From Zygophlyctis sp. KS116 (Eukaryota > Fungi > Chytridiomycota), in contig BAAFSQ010000356.1 in NCBI GenBank assembly GCA_054661495.1, forward strand, positions 1 through 9,104: DNA of 9,104 nucleotides. The letters run 5' to 3'. Under the pieces are notes generated by a model. The model did not search any database. It saw only the letters and a list, made by a program, of their open reading frames with translations, and had not been told where the DNA came from. Within the stretch, counting starts at the first letter, position 1; each line of letters begins with the position of its first letter. Below are positions 97 through 9,017 of this stretch, one piece after another. A program made the position numbers and the translations under genes.

Positions 97-198
97 ACGC
101 ATCAAAGGCATACAAGAAAACGCATCCAACTTTTCCCAATAAGGTGGGTATCAGTTAGTGAGTTTGAGTGGTTGGTTTTGGTCAGATCAGAGTTGAAA

Positions 199-3100
199 AT
201 GTCGATTGGACCAAATGAAGCATCGGCGCTGTTGTCTTCTTTAGGAGCAGCAACTCCCGATCAGATTTCTCAGACATTCAACTTTTGCTTGCAGTTATTA
301 GCAAAGGACTCATTAGCATCATTGACCCTTTTACCAGGACTATTGGCTAATTTAAGTCTAGAGTTATCGCAAGAGAATAGTATTCTGTTGCTGAAATGTT
401 TACTTTTTATTCTTAAAACGGCTGCCAATTACGAACCTTCAACTGCAATTTCTATATTTTCATCAGGACTGGAAGGATTGGGGACTTATTCTGTTAGTGA
501 TCAGCCTCAGTTGCTAAAGGAATGGATTCTATCAATGACAACTATTTACCCATTGCTGTTTCGGTTTTTATGTAGACATTTTTCAGATTCCACTCCTTGG
601 GATCTATTCAGTTCACAAGTAAATATTATTGAAAGTTTGTTGCATCATCCAAATGATGGTATTAAAGTTGCAGTTACAAAGTTTTTACAGGTTGTAGTGT
701 TGATAGGAAGTCCTAGAGAAGGTGTAAGATTTAATATTTTTTTTATAAGTATAGGGAGATCGATCATATCCTTCAATTGATGACATTCCATTTCATCATC
801 CTTTTTTAATTTCAAATGATTTGAGGAATGATGGGGTTTTAGCGTTTAATAAGTTGATTGCTATACTCTCAATGAATCTAATGTACATATTTTTACGATT
901 AATTTGATAAGGCCTCCAGGTGTAATGACAGCATCAATTCACTCTCTTCAATCTATATGTCAAAATAGATCAGAATTTTTGGATTTTACTGTTAAAACTC
1001 TTTTACAATGGTCGTCAAGTTCTCCAGATCATTTGAGTAAAATGCAAAAAAGATCAGTTGAACGGAGTATAAAGATTTTTATGTTGTGTATGTTGAAGTA
1101 AGTTTAAGCTTTTTAATAAATTTTAGGAATGCAGCGGCCGAACCACTTCTTGATTATATTCAAGAGTTTTTGTTGGAAATAGGTGTAAGATCTATGGAAA
1201 TTAGGATGCGTATTCAGCAGAAAACAAGTAAAAAGGCATTTGCATCAGATTGGGAAGAGGATGCCAAATTAATTAAAGTATTAATTTTATTCTAAAATAT
1301 TAGACTGAACAAGATTTTCAATTATCTGATTTGTTTTTGCGAACTGTTAATATTACTCAGATTCCGTATCCTATACTTATTGAAATAATTATTCATACGT
1401 TGCTTACGGTTACCCCACAAAACTGGGAACTAGGAATGAATGTATTTCCATTATAAAGTTAAATTTTAGTTTTATAGGCAAATGAATGGTATTTTAAGCC
1501 CGGAAGAGATGGCTGCAGCGGTGGCAGCAGAATCTGCACAAGTGCAATCTGTGGAACCGGTTTCTGTACCAGAAGGAGAGGAAGTTAAGGAAGAATCAAT
1601 GATTATATTAGATGCTGATCCTGAGTCTGTTGTTCAGCCACCTAGAGAACTCTCTAGCTATGAAAAGCATCAAGTCTTTCAAGAAATTCTTCATAGATTT
1701 TTTGAATCCGAATATAGATTTTCGGGCTCAACTGGGTCCGGTGGTCAGGCCGTGACAATAAAAATTCACCAGGTATCAGAGACAGACTCTTTGGCAGCTG
1801 CGAAAAGTGGTTGGATTCTGCTAATATCAAGGCTTTTAAACAGAGGCCAATCGATTCCCGATACTCCACAATTCGAAACCATATTAAAAGCAAAGGAGAT
1901 TTTGGTATCGTTTATTTTAGATAGCTTCAAGGACCGTATGGATCTTGCTATACTTTGGCTCCATGAAGAGTACTTTAAGCGCTCGTGGATGCCTGAGTTA
2001 TCGGATGACCGAGATACCTACTCACTATGGTTTCAAAGTGTTTTATATGGTCTTCAAAAACCTAGAAACGACCAAGGAGAGTATGCCTTAGATCATAAAG
2101 ATCGTGCATTTACACGTTTTCTAATGGACGCCCCTGATATAGACTTTGATTTTGTGTTTGAAGTCATCGATATTTATTGCAATGAGCCTGAAAGAATGGC
2201 ATTAGGAATCTCTACTTTGCGGGATATGATCCTCTATCGACCGGTTGTAAGATCTCGCTGTATGGAAATGCTCCTCCAATTATGCAGGCATAAACGTATA
2301 TTTTCATGTTTTAATACTAGATAAAACTACAAGAGCGACCTCGATCGTTACTTGCAAGAAGTTCTACAAAGAGCACATTACACTCGGCCCACTAGTAGAA
2401 AAATATGCACTGGAAACAATGAAAAAACTACTTGAGGCACCTGAAGAAGAAGTAGAAGAAATACCAGTTGGTGAGGCTGAAGAAGAAATACCAGTTGGTG
2501 AGACTGAAGAAGAAATAGATCAAATGATTGAAAAAGAACTACCAGACGTCGCAATGACTGATGTTGAAAAGTCAACTGAGGGAAAAGCTGAAGAAGTTTC
2601 AGCTCTAGAATGGAAAGAAGCTGACATCATTAGACATCTTGAAATGTACTTTTCTTTCTGTAGCAAGAATCATGAATTTTTGGATGAGTATGCTCAAATT
2701 ATAATTTAATTGTTAGGATTTTTAATCTATTCCCAGAATTCTCTGATTCGGTAAAAAAGGTGGTCCAGAAACACATTGGTGGTTTAGTCAAGGCGCTTTC
2801 TTCTACCCCTTCTAAGTTGTATTCTCTGATAGATATCTTCCCCAAAGGCTCTGATGCATTAATTCTTCGAATCATTGCTGTTTTAGCAAGTTCAGACCCA
2901 ATACCAGAGAGTTTGATTGAATCCGTTAAAGGATTGTACAGTAAGCAGGATATGGATGCCCGATTCTTAATTCCTATTTTAACAGCGTTACCGAAAGTAA
3001 ATTTTGTATATCTAATCTGTTTAGAATGAAATATTACAGGCTTTACCAAAAGTTTTCAAATTGCTTGATGGATCAGAAGCGCAAAAGAGTGTCGTTCGGG

Positions 3101-3716
3101 ATGTAATGATCAAGTTGATACGCTCTAAAAAAGAAATTTCTAGTGAAACAGCGGCAGAAACTGATTTGCCACCTATCATGACCCCTGTTGAGCTAATGAT
3201 TTGGATCCATTCTGCTGAAGATAGCCTTGGTTTGAAAGTGGCTGTTGAAGGTAAGAATTAACAATAATTTTATAATTAGCCACATCTATTTGCTTTACTA
3301 CTCGAGAATATTACACTCAAGAAACTCTTGCGATTGTTTTGCAGCAGCTTTTAGATCTCTCTAAACTTCCCACTCTTTTAATGCGTACTATTATACAAAC
3401 CGTCACACTTTATAAAGACTTGGCTGGATTTATTAATTCCATCTTGACTAGACTCATTATGAAAAAGATTTGGACATATCCAAAGCTTTGGGATGGGTTT
3501 ATTAGATGTTGTACCGTAAGATTTTAATTCACTCAGTTTTAGATTATGTTTCCATCATCTCTACCAGTGGTTTATGCGCTTCCAAAAGGACAGGCCCAGG
3601 AAGTTTTTACTAAATCTCCAAAGCTTAAAGAAGCTTTAAAAGTGTTTATTGAATCATTACCATCTCACCAGCGTCATAGAAGAGAATTCAAAACATTATT
3701 ACCTCTGGTTCAATAG
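199..3716 (+). CDS. SYMPK: Symplekin/Pta1, scaffold of the pre-mRNA cleavage and polyadenylation complex (~1078 aa, 11 exons)
   Basis: Exons 199-723, 755-882, 912-1097, 1127-1277, 1304-1441, 1470-2295, 2321-2687, 2717-2996, 3025-3250, 3280-3515 and 3543-3716 total 3237 nt and read through without internal stops. All 10 introns are GT-AG, 25-31 nt. N-terminal motifs [17 protein letters not shown] and [12 protein letters not shown], central [10 protein letters not shown] and [14 protein letters not shown], and C-terminal [11 protein letters not shown]...[21 protein letters not shown] match the symplekin family. The ATG is in AAAATG context. Confidence 0.92.
2455..2517 (+). repeat. In-frame 27-bp tandem duplication in the symplekin acidic loop (EEIPVGEAE / EEIPVGETE / EEI)
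   Basis: gaagaaataccagttggtgaggctgaa (2455-2481) and gaagaaataccagttggtgagactgaa (2482-2508) differ at 1 nt, followed by a partial third copy. Confidence 0.95.
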
Positions 3717-3862: not shown

Positions 3863-5241
3863 TTATTCTGGCGGAGCATAGTATGGGTACAGAGAAACAA
3901 CTTCCTTCTTGTTCTTTGCAACTTGATAAACATTCTTCCATACATCCAGTAATTCTTGAGCGGAATTAATATCTTCATCTATTCTCATCAATCCCAAAAT
4001 TTCAAAAACAGCAGGATATGTTGAAGCGAGTGGACTTATTGTTGCGAATAAATGGTCCCTTGAAGCAAATTCATTTGGTTTTTTCAACATGACACGAGCA
4101 ATTGAGATCGAAAGACTATTAACATCATAGCGAATAGACGGAGAGTGGTGCTCGAATTCCATTCCAGGTGTAGTAGAGCTAATAAAACCTCCAAACTTTT
4201 TAGCAGAACCAAAATCAATCAAAACGACTTTAGTACGAGTTTCAAACATTAGATTAGTCAGTTTAATATCACAATGAGCTAGTCCTTGAGATGCAAATGA
4301 ATAAATGGCTGAAATTCCACAAAGTAGAATAGATATGATAGCTTCCTCACGTGGGAATTTATCTAGATTAAGTAACCAGTCTGCGACTGTTTCTACATAC
4401 ACAGGGGTAAACATGGCCGCTCTTTCTTCAGGCAAGCTAATAATGTTGATAATAGGCATAACACAGGGACCTACTACTATTTTACCAACCTCTACTTCAG
4501 CTTTGATCGTATCAAGTCGCCCAATCTTTGCACAATAGCGTGATTTGTCGTCATAGACCGATTGAATTATTGTTCCTGCTTGGCTCGGGTGCGAAATAAT
4601 TTCACCGAAACGGTAACCATACGCTTCACCAACTTGCAACTTGGTGGTTGTCTTGAGAATTAATTTTGCTTCGTCAACAAATTCTCTTGCTTGATTCCTT
4701 GTCCAGCCAGTGCATTCATGAAGGCGGTGATTAAATTGAGTCTTTTTTGTCAGTAATCTGATCAGAGAATCAGACAATTTCGGGCCATCAACTAATTCTT
4801 GTATCTTTGGGACGTAAGCCTCTTTGTCAATCGCAGGCGGGCTCAATTCTGATATTAGTCCCTCATCACTAAAATACCTCTTTTCATTTCTGTACCAATA
4901 ACACTGACAATAAGAGCATCTTTTAATGACTTTCCAAGACCATCCACAGGTGAATCTTCCTCGAGCGGCTCTTCCTGTTTGTAAGATTTGAAATCATTTA
5001 CATTTTTTCTTTTAGAATTTCTCTTATCAAATGATTGCTTGTTCTGAAAGACCAAGAGATCAGAAGGACTTATTCCTTTGAGATGGCTGTCAGAGTACTC
5101 GGCTTTGACAGCTTTTCTAAACTGAGCAATAACAGCAGATGAAGGAATAGTCACATAATCAGCAGTCGTTCCCTTGTATGGCTTTCCAGTCCCATAGTCA
5201 TAGAGATGAAACCAAATATTGGATTGATCTGTACTTGACAT
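3863..5241 (-). CDS. Crinkler (CRN)-type protein: ubiquitin-like CRN N-terminal domain plus C-terminal Ser/Thr protein kinase (440 aa, or 449 aa if the 27-nt intron is retained)
   Basis: The N-terminus IWFHLYDYGTGKPYKGTTADYV..FRKAVKAEY..DLLVFQNKQSFDKRN..EEPLEEDS..LGKSLKDALIVSV resembles CRN header domains of chytrids and oomycetes. A 29-nt intron at 4877-4849 (gtatt...gactaatatcag) joins it in frame to ORF 3863-4846, which has kinase motifs CAKIG (VAIK lysine), HCDIKLTN and DFG. A second probable intron lies at 5001-4975 (27 nt, in frame). Confidence 0.85.
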
Positions 5242-5751: not shown

Positions 5752-6639
5752 TTACTGATTAGATTTTTTGGGTTTCAATGCTTTGCGAGTCTTGGAAGCT
5801 TTCTTCTTTAAAGTCTTCTTCTTTATAATCTTCTTTACAACCTTTTTCTTTTTAATTGGAATTGATTTTTTGACCTTTTTCTTTACAACTTTTCCTTTTT
5901 TAACAATTCTTCCCACTTCTTTCACAGAGTCTTTAACTTGTTGAATCTCAGAATCATAGTCTAACATTTCCTTTTTGAAAACTTTCATTTCAGCCTGATA
6001 TTTTTGTAAGAATAATTGCTTTTTAGAAGATTCCAATTCTCTCCATGCACGTCCCAAGATTGAAGCCTGTTCAGTAACAGGAATGTTACTCAAACTTTCT
6101 AATCCATACAAACTAGGATTAGAGCGAGCAGCTGTAGAGAATTTAAAGTAAGGACTTAACGGTTTTACAGGTTTGTTCTTATCTACAGGCGGTTTTTGCG
6201 TAATCTTTCCAGCAAGTTTTTTAAAGGACCAGGCCTGATTTTCAAGATAAGCATCTGCAGATGTTCGATTGGCCATATATATTTTCAAGTTTTGAGAATA
6301 ATCTTGTTTAGATTTTTCATATTCTTCAATAAATGGCTGAGAATTTGAGTTTGTTGTTAGATTACCTTTTTCTCCTCATCAGACATTTCACTCCATTCTT
6401 TAGATGCTTTACTTGCAGCATTTCTAAATTTTGTTTTTGCATCGGACTCTAAAGAGTCTTTGAGCTCCTGACGGATTTTACGCGATGAAAACAATATATA
6501 CGCAGACACTGGTCTCTTTGGATACACAACAGCAGGCTTCTCAATTTTCTTTAATATTGTCTTTGCATCTATTGTTAATTCTATTAATAATACATGGCAA
6601 AAGAGACTTTGGCGCACTCAAAAACGAGAAAATTTTCAT
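5752..6639 (-). CDS. Two-HMG-box protein with Lys-rich C-terminal tail, probably mitochondrial nucleoid Abf2/TFAM-like (277 aa, 3 exons)
   Basis: Exons 6639-6594, 6568-6366 and 6336-5752, with introns 6593-6569 (25 nt) and 6365-6337 (29 nt). HMG box 1 is PKRPVSAYILF...ASKEWSEMSDEEKKPF and box 2 is PVKPLSPYFKF...LGRAWRELESSKKQLF. The N-terminus MKIFSFLSAPKSLLPYAK lacks acidic residues, like a presequence. Mitochondrial identity is inferred. Confidence 0.85.
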
Positions 6640-6671: not shown

Positions 6672-7785
6672 TTAAAAGTCTTCATCAAGTTTAAACACTA
6701 CAGTCTCCAGACTCTTTTTTACAGTCTTTTTAGGAGTTGCAATTACTCTTGTCAATGTATGATCTCCATCTTCTGATAGAGCTTCCTTTTTTAAAATTGG
6801 TTCAATCCATGATAATGGATCTTTAACCTTGTAAACTGGTGCATATCCTAGATTAAGTAAAATATTATCGGCATGCCAATTTAATCTCATTTTTACAGAT
6901 TTACCATCTACAGAATTCCCTCCAAGAGTTAAATTAGTTCCCATTAATCCTAATACATCATCAACAACTGCACTTTCAACTTTAATAAGATCTTGAACAA
7001 TTTTTATAGCTTGAAACTGACTAGGCTTCTTTATCAAATGACTAGAAATAATATCCATAAAATGAGCATAAGAATTAAAATCTCTTGCAACCTTGCAAAT
7101 ACTTTTAAAAAGACCTGGAATAGCTTTTTCTTCAGCCTTTACCAAATACATAAATATATCCATTAATCCTCTATACAACATATGATAGTAAATCCCCAAA
7201 GCTAATACTCGAACACCAAAAGAGTCAGTAGTATCCGTAATATTTGATTCAATCCATGCTTTTCTTAATGAAAGAGAATTCAACTTGCTAGTAGATTCAA
7301 GAATTGCATCCTTGTCCGAGTAATTACTAGTAAAAAGATCCAAAATAACTGTAAATAATTCATTATGAATGTTTCTTTGCATTCCCATAAACCCAAAAAA
7401 ACATCTAGCTTCAGACACTTGAATTTCATCAGATATTTTAGAAACGAGATTTTCACTTAAAAAGGCATCATTAATTGCAAAAAGTGCAACTAAAGTCGTC
7501 AAAAAGGATTTCTCCTTTCCAGAAAAATTATCAAACTTTTCAGAGTCATGTCCTAATTCTATTTCTTCGGCGGACCAGAATTTAGCCTCGGCATTCTTGT
7601 ACGCCTTCCAAATCTTGATTTAGTAAAAGAAATTGTACATTATCATATTGTATTGGAAATAAAACAAATCTCTTATTATTATGAGCAAGGAGAGGTTCGG
7701 TCTGTTCCTTGACGTCTAAAACTACCATCTTTTTAGTAATCGGTGTAGTTCCAGTGCCAGACTCCATCAATGTGTTTGAAATCAT
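6672..7785 (-). CDS. Ribonucleotide reductase small subunit (R2/beta) paralogue lacking most di-iron ligands and the radical Tyr (362 aa, 2 exons)
   Basis: Exons 7785-7639 and 7613-6672, with a 25-nt intron at 7638-7614. R2 motifs: EPLL..N.KRFVLFPIQY..IWKAYKNAEAKFWSAEEIEL, ENLV...EIQVSEARCFFGF, NIH.E, PGL..S...ARD and C-terminal FKLDEDF. The frame is intact with no internal stops. Confidence 0.92.
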
Positions 7786-7921: not shown

Positions 7922-8646
7922 ATGAATCCCGAATAGTAAAATCTATTTTTGACTGACTGATAGTGACTATCTCTTTAAACTTTTACTGATTGGAGATTCC
8001 GGTGTTGGTAAGTCTTGTCTGTTACTTCGATTTGCTGTATTTTACATTTTACATTTTGAAATACTTAGGATGACACGTATACAGAGTCTTACATTTCTAC
8101 AATTGGAGTAGATTTTAAAATCAGAACAATTGAATTAGAAGGGAAAACTGTTAAACTGCAAATTGTAATTTTAATAATTAAGTAAAAAAAGTGGGACACT
8201 GCAGGTCAAGAAAGATTTAGGACTATCACGTCTTCTTATTACAGAGGAGCACATGGAATTATTGTTGTGTATGATGTTACAGATCAGGAAACTTTTTCAA
8301 ATGTAAAACAATGGTTACAGGAAATTGATCGATATGCAAGTGAAGGTGTTAATAAGTTGTTGGTTGGGAATAAAAGTGATTTGGTGAATAAAAAAGTTGT
8401 AGAGTTTAAGACTGCAAAGGTAAATTTTTAAAAAAAGAAATTTTATATTAATAGGATTTTGCTGATCAATTAAGCATTCCATTCTTGGAAACCTCAGCCA
8501 AGAATGCAACAAATGTAGAACAAGCTTTTTTAACAATGGCTAAACAGATTAAAGATAGAATGGGTTCTCCTTCGTCTGGTGTGTCCAAGGACAAGGTTAA
8601 ATTGGAAGGAAAGTCTGTTAATGTCAAGGGTGAGGGTTGTTGTTAA
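7922..8646 (+). CDS. YPT1: Rab1/Ypt1 small GTPase (200 aa, 5 exons); missed by the ORF track
   Basis: Exons 7922-7935, 7964-8036, 8069-8164, 8192-8419 and 8455-8646 (603 nt), with introns of 28, 32, 27 and 35 nt. Protein reads [83 protein letters not shown]...GNKSD...ETSAK...GCC*, with all G-boxes and the CC prenylation motif. Confidence 0.98.
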
Positions 8647-8647
8647 A

Positions 8648-9017
8648 ATGATTACTGTCACAATTCGAATTATTAAAAGCTTTGAGTATCGAAACTTTAA
8701 AAATATAATTCTACATATTGATCCATTAATGACTGTCCAAGAGTTGAAGGTTGAAATAATGAAAAAGTTGCCAAAAGGCTTAAATAATATAAATTATGAT
8801 ACTCTTAAAATTTATGTAAAGGCTCATGGATCTAAAACTTCAAATTTGATTATAAACTTGGATAATCAAGGAATGTTGGATGATTTAAAGACTTTAGAGT
8901 CTCAAGGTTTGAGAATTAGGTTTAAAAGGATTAGGGGTTGAAAATGAAACTGAACTTTCATTCTTTGTTTTATGTGATTATCAAAAATTTAAAGAGAATC
9001 CAGTTACAAAGTGGTAA
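8648..9017 (+). CDS. UPF0538 / C2orf76-family (DUF2340) ubiquitin-like protein (113 aa, 2 exons)
   Basis: Exons 8648-8906 and 8935-9017, with a 28-nt intron at 8907-8934. MITVTIRIIKSFEYRNFKN...YDTLKIYVKAHGSKTSNLIINLD...GVENETELSFF...DYQKFKENPVTKW* follows the family pattern ITVR.IRSFE.RN / YD.LKI...AH.SKT / ETE..FF / NP...W. Confidence 0.88.

Follow-up and report, generated by a model that had tools for sequence, protein, structure and literature searches.

Why would a genome keep a small subunit of ribonucleotide reductase (R2) that has lost its catalytic site? The question arises from a gene of the chytrid Zygophlyctis sp. KS116, which lies in a 9,104-nt stretch of contig BAAFSQ010000356.1 (hereafter, the window). 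The original prediction was that this gene encodes an intact but dead R2, which could be a beta-prime subunit that evolved independently of Rnr4 from Saccharomyces cerevisiae, or a regulator of the enzyme. Rnr4 is usually seen as an oddity of budding yeast, and why an R2 would need a dead partner is not settled.

An R2 paralog with an incomplete cofactor site

The gene is on the minus strand and has two exons, a 25-nt intron with GT..AG ends, and a product of 362 amino acids (Table 1). A relative with 77% identity (L009) has a 25-nt intron at the matching site and the identical MIS start, and the copy in a near-identical strain also retains the intron. The neighbors of the KS116 gene are a divergent Ypt1/Rab gene on one side and an HMG-box gene on the other. 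The Ypt1/Rab gene (7960-8941, +) has very short introns, one of which (35 nt, in the 8418-8452 region) is skipped in an RNA contig, and a DUF2340 gene is close behind it. The HMG-box gene (5752-6617, −) combines two HMG-box matches with a long lysine-rich tail. It lies next downstream of the R2 paralog in this genome and in L010, and apparently also in L009, where an HMG-like ORF follows the paralog. The window also contains a multi-exon symplekin/Pta1 gene (172-3716, +; PF11935 and PF12295) and, at 3863-5241 (−), a 128-aa ORF with a faint match to the Crinkler N-terminus (E 0.054) that is directly upstream of a 327-aa kinase-like ORF (PF00069). This DNA is also present in freshwater metagenomes.

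Table 1. Features of the R2 paralog, in window positions.
Feature	Positions	Strand	Remarks
Exon 1	7785-7639	(-)	Residues 1-49, 49 codons; EPLL..N..RFVLFPIQY motif common to canonical R2
Intron	7638-7614	(-)	25 nt, GT..AG; same place and length in relatives
Exon 2	7613-6672	(-)	Residues 50-362, 313 codons plus TAA; ferritin-like R2 fold
Module 1, residues 30-72	7545-7698	(-)	N-terminal strand, helix A, FWSAEE loop; interrupted by the intron
Module 2, residues 110-136 (helix C)	7353-7433	(-)	Glu ligand now R129, radical Tyr now F136, H132 unchanged
D98	7467-7469	(-)	Ligand position kept (mouse D139); in 26/40 of the family
Y191-Y192	7185-7190	(-)	Y192 for ligand E233; aromatic 191 typical of the family
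D227-F228-N-S-Y231	7068-7082	(-)	D227 near-invariant, F228 for E267, Y231 for H270
Tail linker, residues 326-355	6696-6785	(-)	Stands in for the KTNFFEKRV.EY segment; low pLDDT; TPKK at 342
Heptapeptide FKLDEDF	6675-6695	(-)	R1-binding motif; F..DF in 97% of members reaching it

Homologue searches were run exon by exon, and the AlphaFold model covers exon 2. Exon 2 matches the profile of the ribonucleotide reductase small chain (PF00268) at 143 bits, against a cut-off of 33.6. The model of exon 2 (pLDDT 88.8) adopts the R2 fold, with TM scores of 0.75-0.78 against the human, mouse, and yeast R2 structures; its helices are continuous through the ligand positions, and its tail is disordered. From its first residue onward, exon 2 aligns with residues 91-354 of mouse R2 (1h0n), and the alignment to human R2 is free of gaps up to exon-2 residue 156, so the residue numbering that was first proposed holds (W62=W103, D98=D139, R129=E170, H132=H173, F136=Y177, Y192=E233, D227=D266, F228=E267, and Y231=H270 of mouse R2). 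The alignment bears out the predicted loss of four iron ligands (E170, E233, E267, and H270 become R129, Y192, F228, and Y231), which leaves two of the six, D98 and H132, and the predicted replacement of the radical tyrosine Y177 by F136. Thus, the six ligands of active class Ia R2 (D,E,H,E,E,H) are absent as a set. The radical-transfer segment KTNFFEKRV.EY is absent from the C-terminus, and so is the C-terminal transfer Tyr (Y370) of active class Ia R2, while the protein does end in the R1-binding heptapeptide, FKLDEDF. R226 and D227, which had been noted as conserved, are both present here, but within the family described below this is true of D227 (43 of 44 members) more than of R226 (18 of 44).

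[DE]xxH motifs occur in the protein at positions 68 and 331 only, and none lies within the metal helices; therefore, the site is not restored by any register shift. With two of six ligands and neither the radical Tyr nor the transfer Tyr, the protein is predicted to be catalytically dead, and it is more degenerate than Rnr4, which keeps three of the six.

In line with the original prediction, the gene is not a pseudogene: its frame is open and dN/dS is about 0.1 at two distances, which is evidence of purifying selection. Relative to L009, dS is 1.36 and dN is 0.15 (ratio 0.11), and relative to a close strain there are 8 synonymous and 3 conservative changes (dN/dS 0.10). Across residues 50-72 there are 12 synonymous and zero replacement changes (dN = 0, with synonymous sites saturated), and the codon for Arg129 varies synonymously. 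Weak evidence that the gene is transcribed comes from RNA libraries, in which two short contigs fall within exon 2 (7195-7349 and 6923-7179). None of the RNA-library contigs crosses the intron of the paralog; one of the same libraries shows a spliced joint in the neighboring Ypt1 gene.

A chytrid family and the canonical R2 beside it

Homologue searches and ligand tallies identified at least 44 ligand-poor R2 sequences among the matches listed. The member from Batrachochytrium dendrobatidis is BATDEDRAFT_37293, and the other named members are from Homolaphlyctis, Boothiomyces, Terramyces, Gorgonomyces, Spizellomyces, Gaertneriomyces, Rhizophlyctis, Borealophlyctis, Chytriomyces, Physocladia, Chytridium, Cladochytrium, Nowakowskiella, Clydaea, Polychytrium, Quaeritorhiza, and two Synchytrium species (including Synchytrium endobioticum). 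We take these sources to represent eight chytrid orders. In Batrachochytrium and Synchytrium, the current annotation is hypothetical protein or ordinary R2. A full ligand set or an FFE..Y segment is found in none of the 44 members (the less degenerate P0010 keeps four ligands and the Tyr). Arg or Lys occupies position 129 in 32 of 44 sequences, and 43 of 44 retain H132. A Tyr is rare at position 136 (2 of 44) and usual at position 231 (36 of 44). Q128 is present in 98% of the family and K223 in 80%. All 36 aligned members match PF00268 and no other family, and members are overall 25-30% identical to R2. An intact and a dead copy are both present in eight named taxa. (In the annotation, two members, P0030 and P0032, are long fusions; one has 689 aa and includes methyltransferase domains, and the other has 590 aa. 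The Batrachochytrium copy has a methyltransferase gene nearby, so separate genes may have been merged in these two models.)

Among the matches listed, no family member came from other fungi or from viruses. Seven viral matches to family-specific patterns all carried the canonical E.[IV]H motif and thus lend no support to a viral source, in a tree that samples viruses sparsely. A scan of metagenomes with a generic pattern from the family alignment gave loci at 27-31% identity, which is the level of ordinary R2, and searches of the ESM Atlas by features and by shape gave generic R2 clusters only. Our literature search, which lay mostly outside subscription journals, found no paper on a chytrid R2 paralog or on BATDEDRAFT_37293. 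This pseudo-R2 family of chytrids is real, conserved, and apparently undescribed. Other ligand-poor copies (P0067, P0111, P0066, and P0080, from Chlorella sorokiniana/ohadii, Picozoa SAG22, and two unnamed sources) do not join the chytrid clade in the tree, and dead R2 copies may have arisen repeatedly.

The family forms one clade (support 100/100) in which the KS116 copy groups with homologues from Rhizophydiales (98/90). The branching broadly tracks the chytrid orders, which indicates vertical descent. The tree leaves out Rnr2 and Rnr4 of S. cerevisiae; its Rnr4-like sequences are those of Kazachstania, and these nest with yeast-type RNR2, apart from the chytrid clade (97/91, or 88/99 once the chytrid clade is left out). 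The best tree thus separates the two groups, as the idea of an independent origin would have it, but the tree alone does not establish this: forcing the Rnr4-like proteins and the chytrid family, both of which have long branches, into a joint clade costs 8.5 log units and is not rejected (p-AU 0.065). In a quick tree with the ligand and convergent columns masked, the chytrid clade held at 100 and the placement of the Rnr4-like proteins was lost. The case for independence therefore draws on further observations. Rnr4 is a copy from the whole-genome duplication of yeasts, and pre-duplication yeasts have one RNR2 (PMC2704937); also, Rnr4 and the chytrid family lost different ligands. With this evidence, a separate origin of the chytrid family is likely. 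A position as sister to chytrid R2 was not recovered in the tree and is not rejected either (p-AU 0.295). The duplication that gave rise to beta-prime would have taken place at or before the base of Chytridiomycetes.

A search of the same genome for a canonical R2 found an intact copy. The 12.7-Mb genome has exactly one other R2 gene (C3:886-1900, L001), which encodes all six ligands, the radical Tyr, and KTNFFEKRVGEY. R1 is encoded at a single locus, with the catalytic motifs SSCF, SNLCTE, CNLAS, and YYLR and a terminal CxxCS, and a search of the genome for a class III enzyme found none. The canonical R2 is itself altered at near-invariant sites: EP is changed to ET, RFV to RLA, a Gln to Tyr, and, in helix C, a Gly to Glu. 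The paralog, for its part, has the changes Gln125Met and Ile126Gly. The Gly is kept in 251 of 255 R2s and the Gln in 242 of 255. The independent sequence P0273 shares these changes, and relatives (P0274-P0276 and P0281) have some of them. These substitutions may mean that the homodimer surface of this canonical R2 is being lost. Ten other canonical R2 sequences from chytrids have the ordinary interface motif without these changes; therefore, dependence on a beta-prime may differ by lineage, and beta homodimers may work in most chytrids.

Possible roles of the paralog

We think that the paralog is probably a radical-less beta-prime, the silent half of a beta/beta-prime heterodimer with the canonical R2 (beta). 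Beta would carry the di-iron/tyrosyl radical and the transfer Tyr. Beta-prime would provide a dimer surface, steady beta during cofactor assembly, and anchor itself on R1 via the heptapeptide, while its former metal site would be plugged by Arg/Lys and Tyr.

The main reason for this proposal is where the family is conserved. Residues 30-72 and 110-136 comprise the N-terminal strand and helices A and C, which we take to be the beta-beta interface. Measured against a canonical R2 from a chytrid, family members are 66% identical over residues 30-72, 23% over 73-109, 60% over 110-136, 22-26% over 137-325, 5% over 326-355, and 62% over 356-362. Similarly, the family keeps 18 of the 23 canonical invariants in residues 30-70 versus 0 of 11 in residues 326-355. 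Helix B is relaxed (the 23% segment), and the tail linker is not conserved across the family. As residues 30-49 are in exon 1 and were outside the first two queries, the conservation is not simply due to search bias. A protein that pairs with itself could drift, yet the segments of the presumed dimer surface are still beta-like, which implies a slowly changing partner. Also, the canonical R2 of this genome has changed in the same segments, as would be expected if it no longer needed to pair with itself. We infer that the conserved segments form a dimer surface, with beta as the partner and an activating effect. The segments may also be those that folding requires.

Three further considerations are consistent with a heterodimer. 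First, the features expected of a beta-prime seem to be in place: an intact R2 co-occurs, and the tail and the presumed dimer surface are kept. The C-terminal segment of R2 binds R1 (PMC3824934), and Rnr4 likewise keeps its dimer surface, has lost the constraint on helix B, and stabilizes Rnr2 (PMC2704937). Second, a class Ia holoenzyme uses a single beta at any one time (PMC8463856, PMC11482829), and therefore one dead half is affordable; in yeast, one cofactor per Rnr2/Rnr4 dimer suffices. Third, the gene is under purifying selection, and the family shares with Rnr4 the two replacements at positions 231 and 68 that are described below.

The main rival, which we consider unlikely, is that the paralog is a negative (dominant-negative) regulator that binds beta, the tail-binding cleft of R1, or both, and so lowers dNTP synthesis in non-replicating stages such as zoospores and resting spores. 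It keeps the R1-binding heptapeptide and the W62/E65/E66 surface without a radical or a transfer Tyr, and C-terminal peptides of R2 are known inhibitors of R1, according to work cited in PMC3824934. Also, a TPKK motif that matches the CDK consensus (6726-6737, −) lies about 18-20 residues before the end. It is doubled in L009, and TPxK occurs at a similar distance from the end in Boothiomyces, Terramyces, and P0169. However, TPxK is patchy (12 of 30 members have it anywhere), and a pure competitor for R1 would need only the tail, yet the beta-like dimer surface is kept in eight orders. The erosion of the canonical R2 in this lineage suggests dependence rather than antagonism. Inhibition retains some probability, since a mixed dimer might also run at half activity or be blocked, but the pattern of conservation favors a heterodimer partner.

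More improbable is an adaptor that sets the compartment or half-life of beta with little effect on cofactor assembly. The conserved interface would fit an adaptor as well as it fits our proposal, and the tail is lysine-rich with its TPKK motif. There is also a precedent in yeast, where the small-subunit heterodimer is retained in the nucleus in a regulated way. Against this, the linker is not conserved across the family, and the conserved heptapeptide points to contact with R1.

A new function outside of ribonucleotide reduction, or a metal-free redox function of the remodeled site, is less probable still. The pocket is constrained rather than random: H132, D227, and W62 are kept, and Y231, Y191, Q128, and K223 are specific to the family, often at the high frequencies given above (such as 36 of 44 for Y231 and 43 of 44 for H132). 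Class Ie R2 is active despite the loss of ligands, with a Lys in the metal site (PMC8463856). But class Ie requires both the radical Tyr and the tail Tyr, which are lost here; Rnr4 has the identical His-to-Tyr plug and no activity; and the best-kept parts of the protein are surfaces, not the pocket. Finally, that the gene is a decaying duplicate or an annotation artifact, to which the long branches in the tree and the lack of a spliced RNA read over the intron might point, is hardly credible given the open frame, the dN/dS of 0.1, the conserved intron, and the 44 intact homologues.

If the paralog is a heterodimer partner, then the family would be a second case of beta-prime, older and further stripped than Rnr4 and kept across the chytrid orders. 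It would suggest that a beta-prime needs a dimer surface and the heptapeptide, not the transfer tail, and it would provide a natural test of half-of-sites asymmetry in a eukaryotic ribonucleotide reductase. A bolder version, which we put forward tentatively and with some doubt, is that an obligate asymmetric beta/beta-prime enzyme has been present in the whole fungal class since its origin, separate from Rnr4 yet converging on some of its substitutions, with the catalytic R2 here losing its homodimer surface. If so, the asymmetry would extend to pathogens of amphibians (frogs) and of potato. Animals and plants are not known to need such a subunit, so drugs against it could act selectively on Batrachochytrium and Synchytrium.

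Comparison with known systems

Rnr4 (PDB 1jk0_B, 1sms) is similar in being an R2 paralog without a di-iron center that occurs beside an intact R2, in keeping the dimer surface and the R1-binding tail with a relaxed helix B, and in having a basic residue in place of one Glu ligand. But Rnr4 keeps D93, E124, and E186 and loses His179, Glu273, and His276 (Rnr2 numbering), while in the chytrid family the first His remains and the three Glu and the last His are gone (D,E,Y,E,R,Y in Rnr4 versus D,R/K,H,x,x,Y in the family). Rnr4 also keeps a Tyr at the radical position and KTTFFEKKVSDY (the FFEK motif), both of which are lost in the chytrid family, and it is about 55% identical to Rnr2, whereas the chytrid family is 25-30% identical to R2 and spans eight orders. 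The family has replaced 17 canonical invariants, and at 2 of these positions the change is the one seen in Rnr4 (Tyr for His at 231, Glu for Asp at 68). Sommerhalter and colleagues are said to have found, in 2004, that the loop after helix A of Rnr4 orders helix B of Rnr2. Position 68 is in this loop, and a tie between its replacement and the ordering of helix B is a lead only. Judged by the sequence features that we tested, the family is probably of the beta-prime kind and probably not an Rnr4 orthologue.

The apicomplexan R2_e2 (the PfR4 clade) is also a second R2 clade that extends throughout its lineage and has conserved a C-terminal motif; it lacks the C-terminal transfer Tyr and often has Phe at the radical position (PMC3824934). 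Most functional residues are conserved in R2_e2 (PMC3824934), whereas four of six ligands are lost in the chytrid family. R2_e2 belongs to a lineage that is unrelated to chytrids, and PMC3824934 does not mention them.

The metal-free class Ie R2 of bacteria resembles the chytrid protein in that three Glu ligands are replaced and a basic residue is in the metal site, but it depends on NrdI and has retained both the tail Tyr and the radical Tyr (as DOPA), neither of which is present in the chytrid protein. Class Ic R2 and R2lox share the Phe at the position of the radical Tyr, but they keep their ligands and bind Mn/Fe, whereas the ligand set of the chytrid protein is incomplete. R2lox also lacks the R1-binding end, while the chytrid protein has the heptapeptide.
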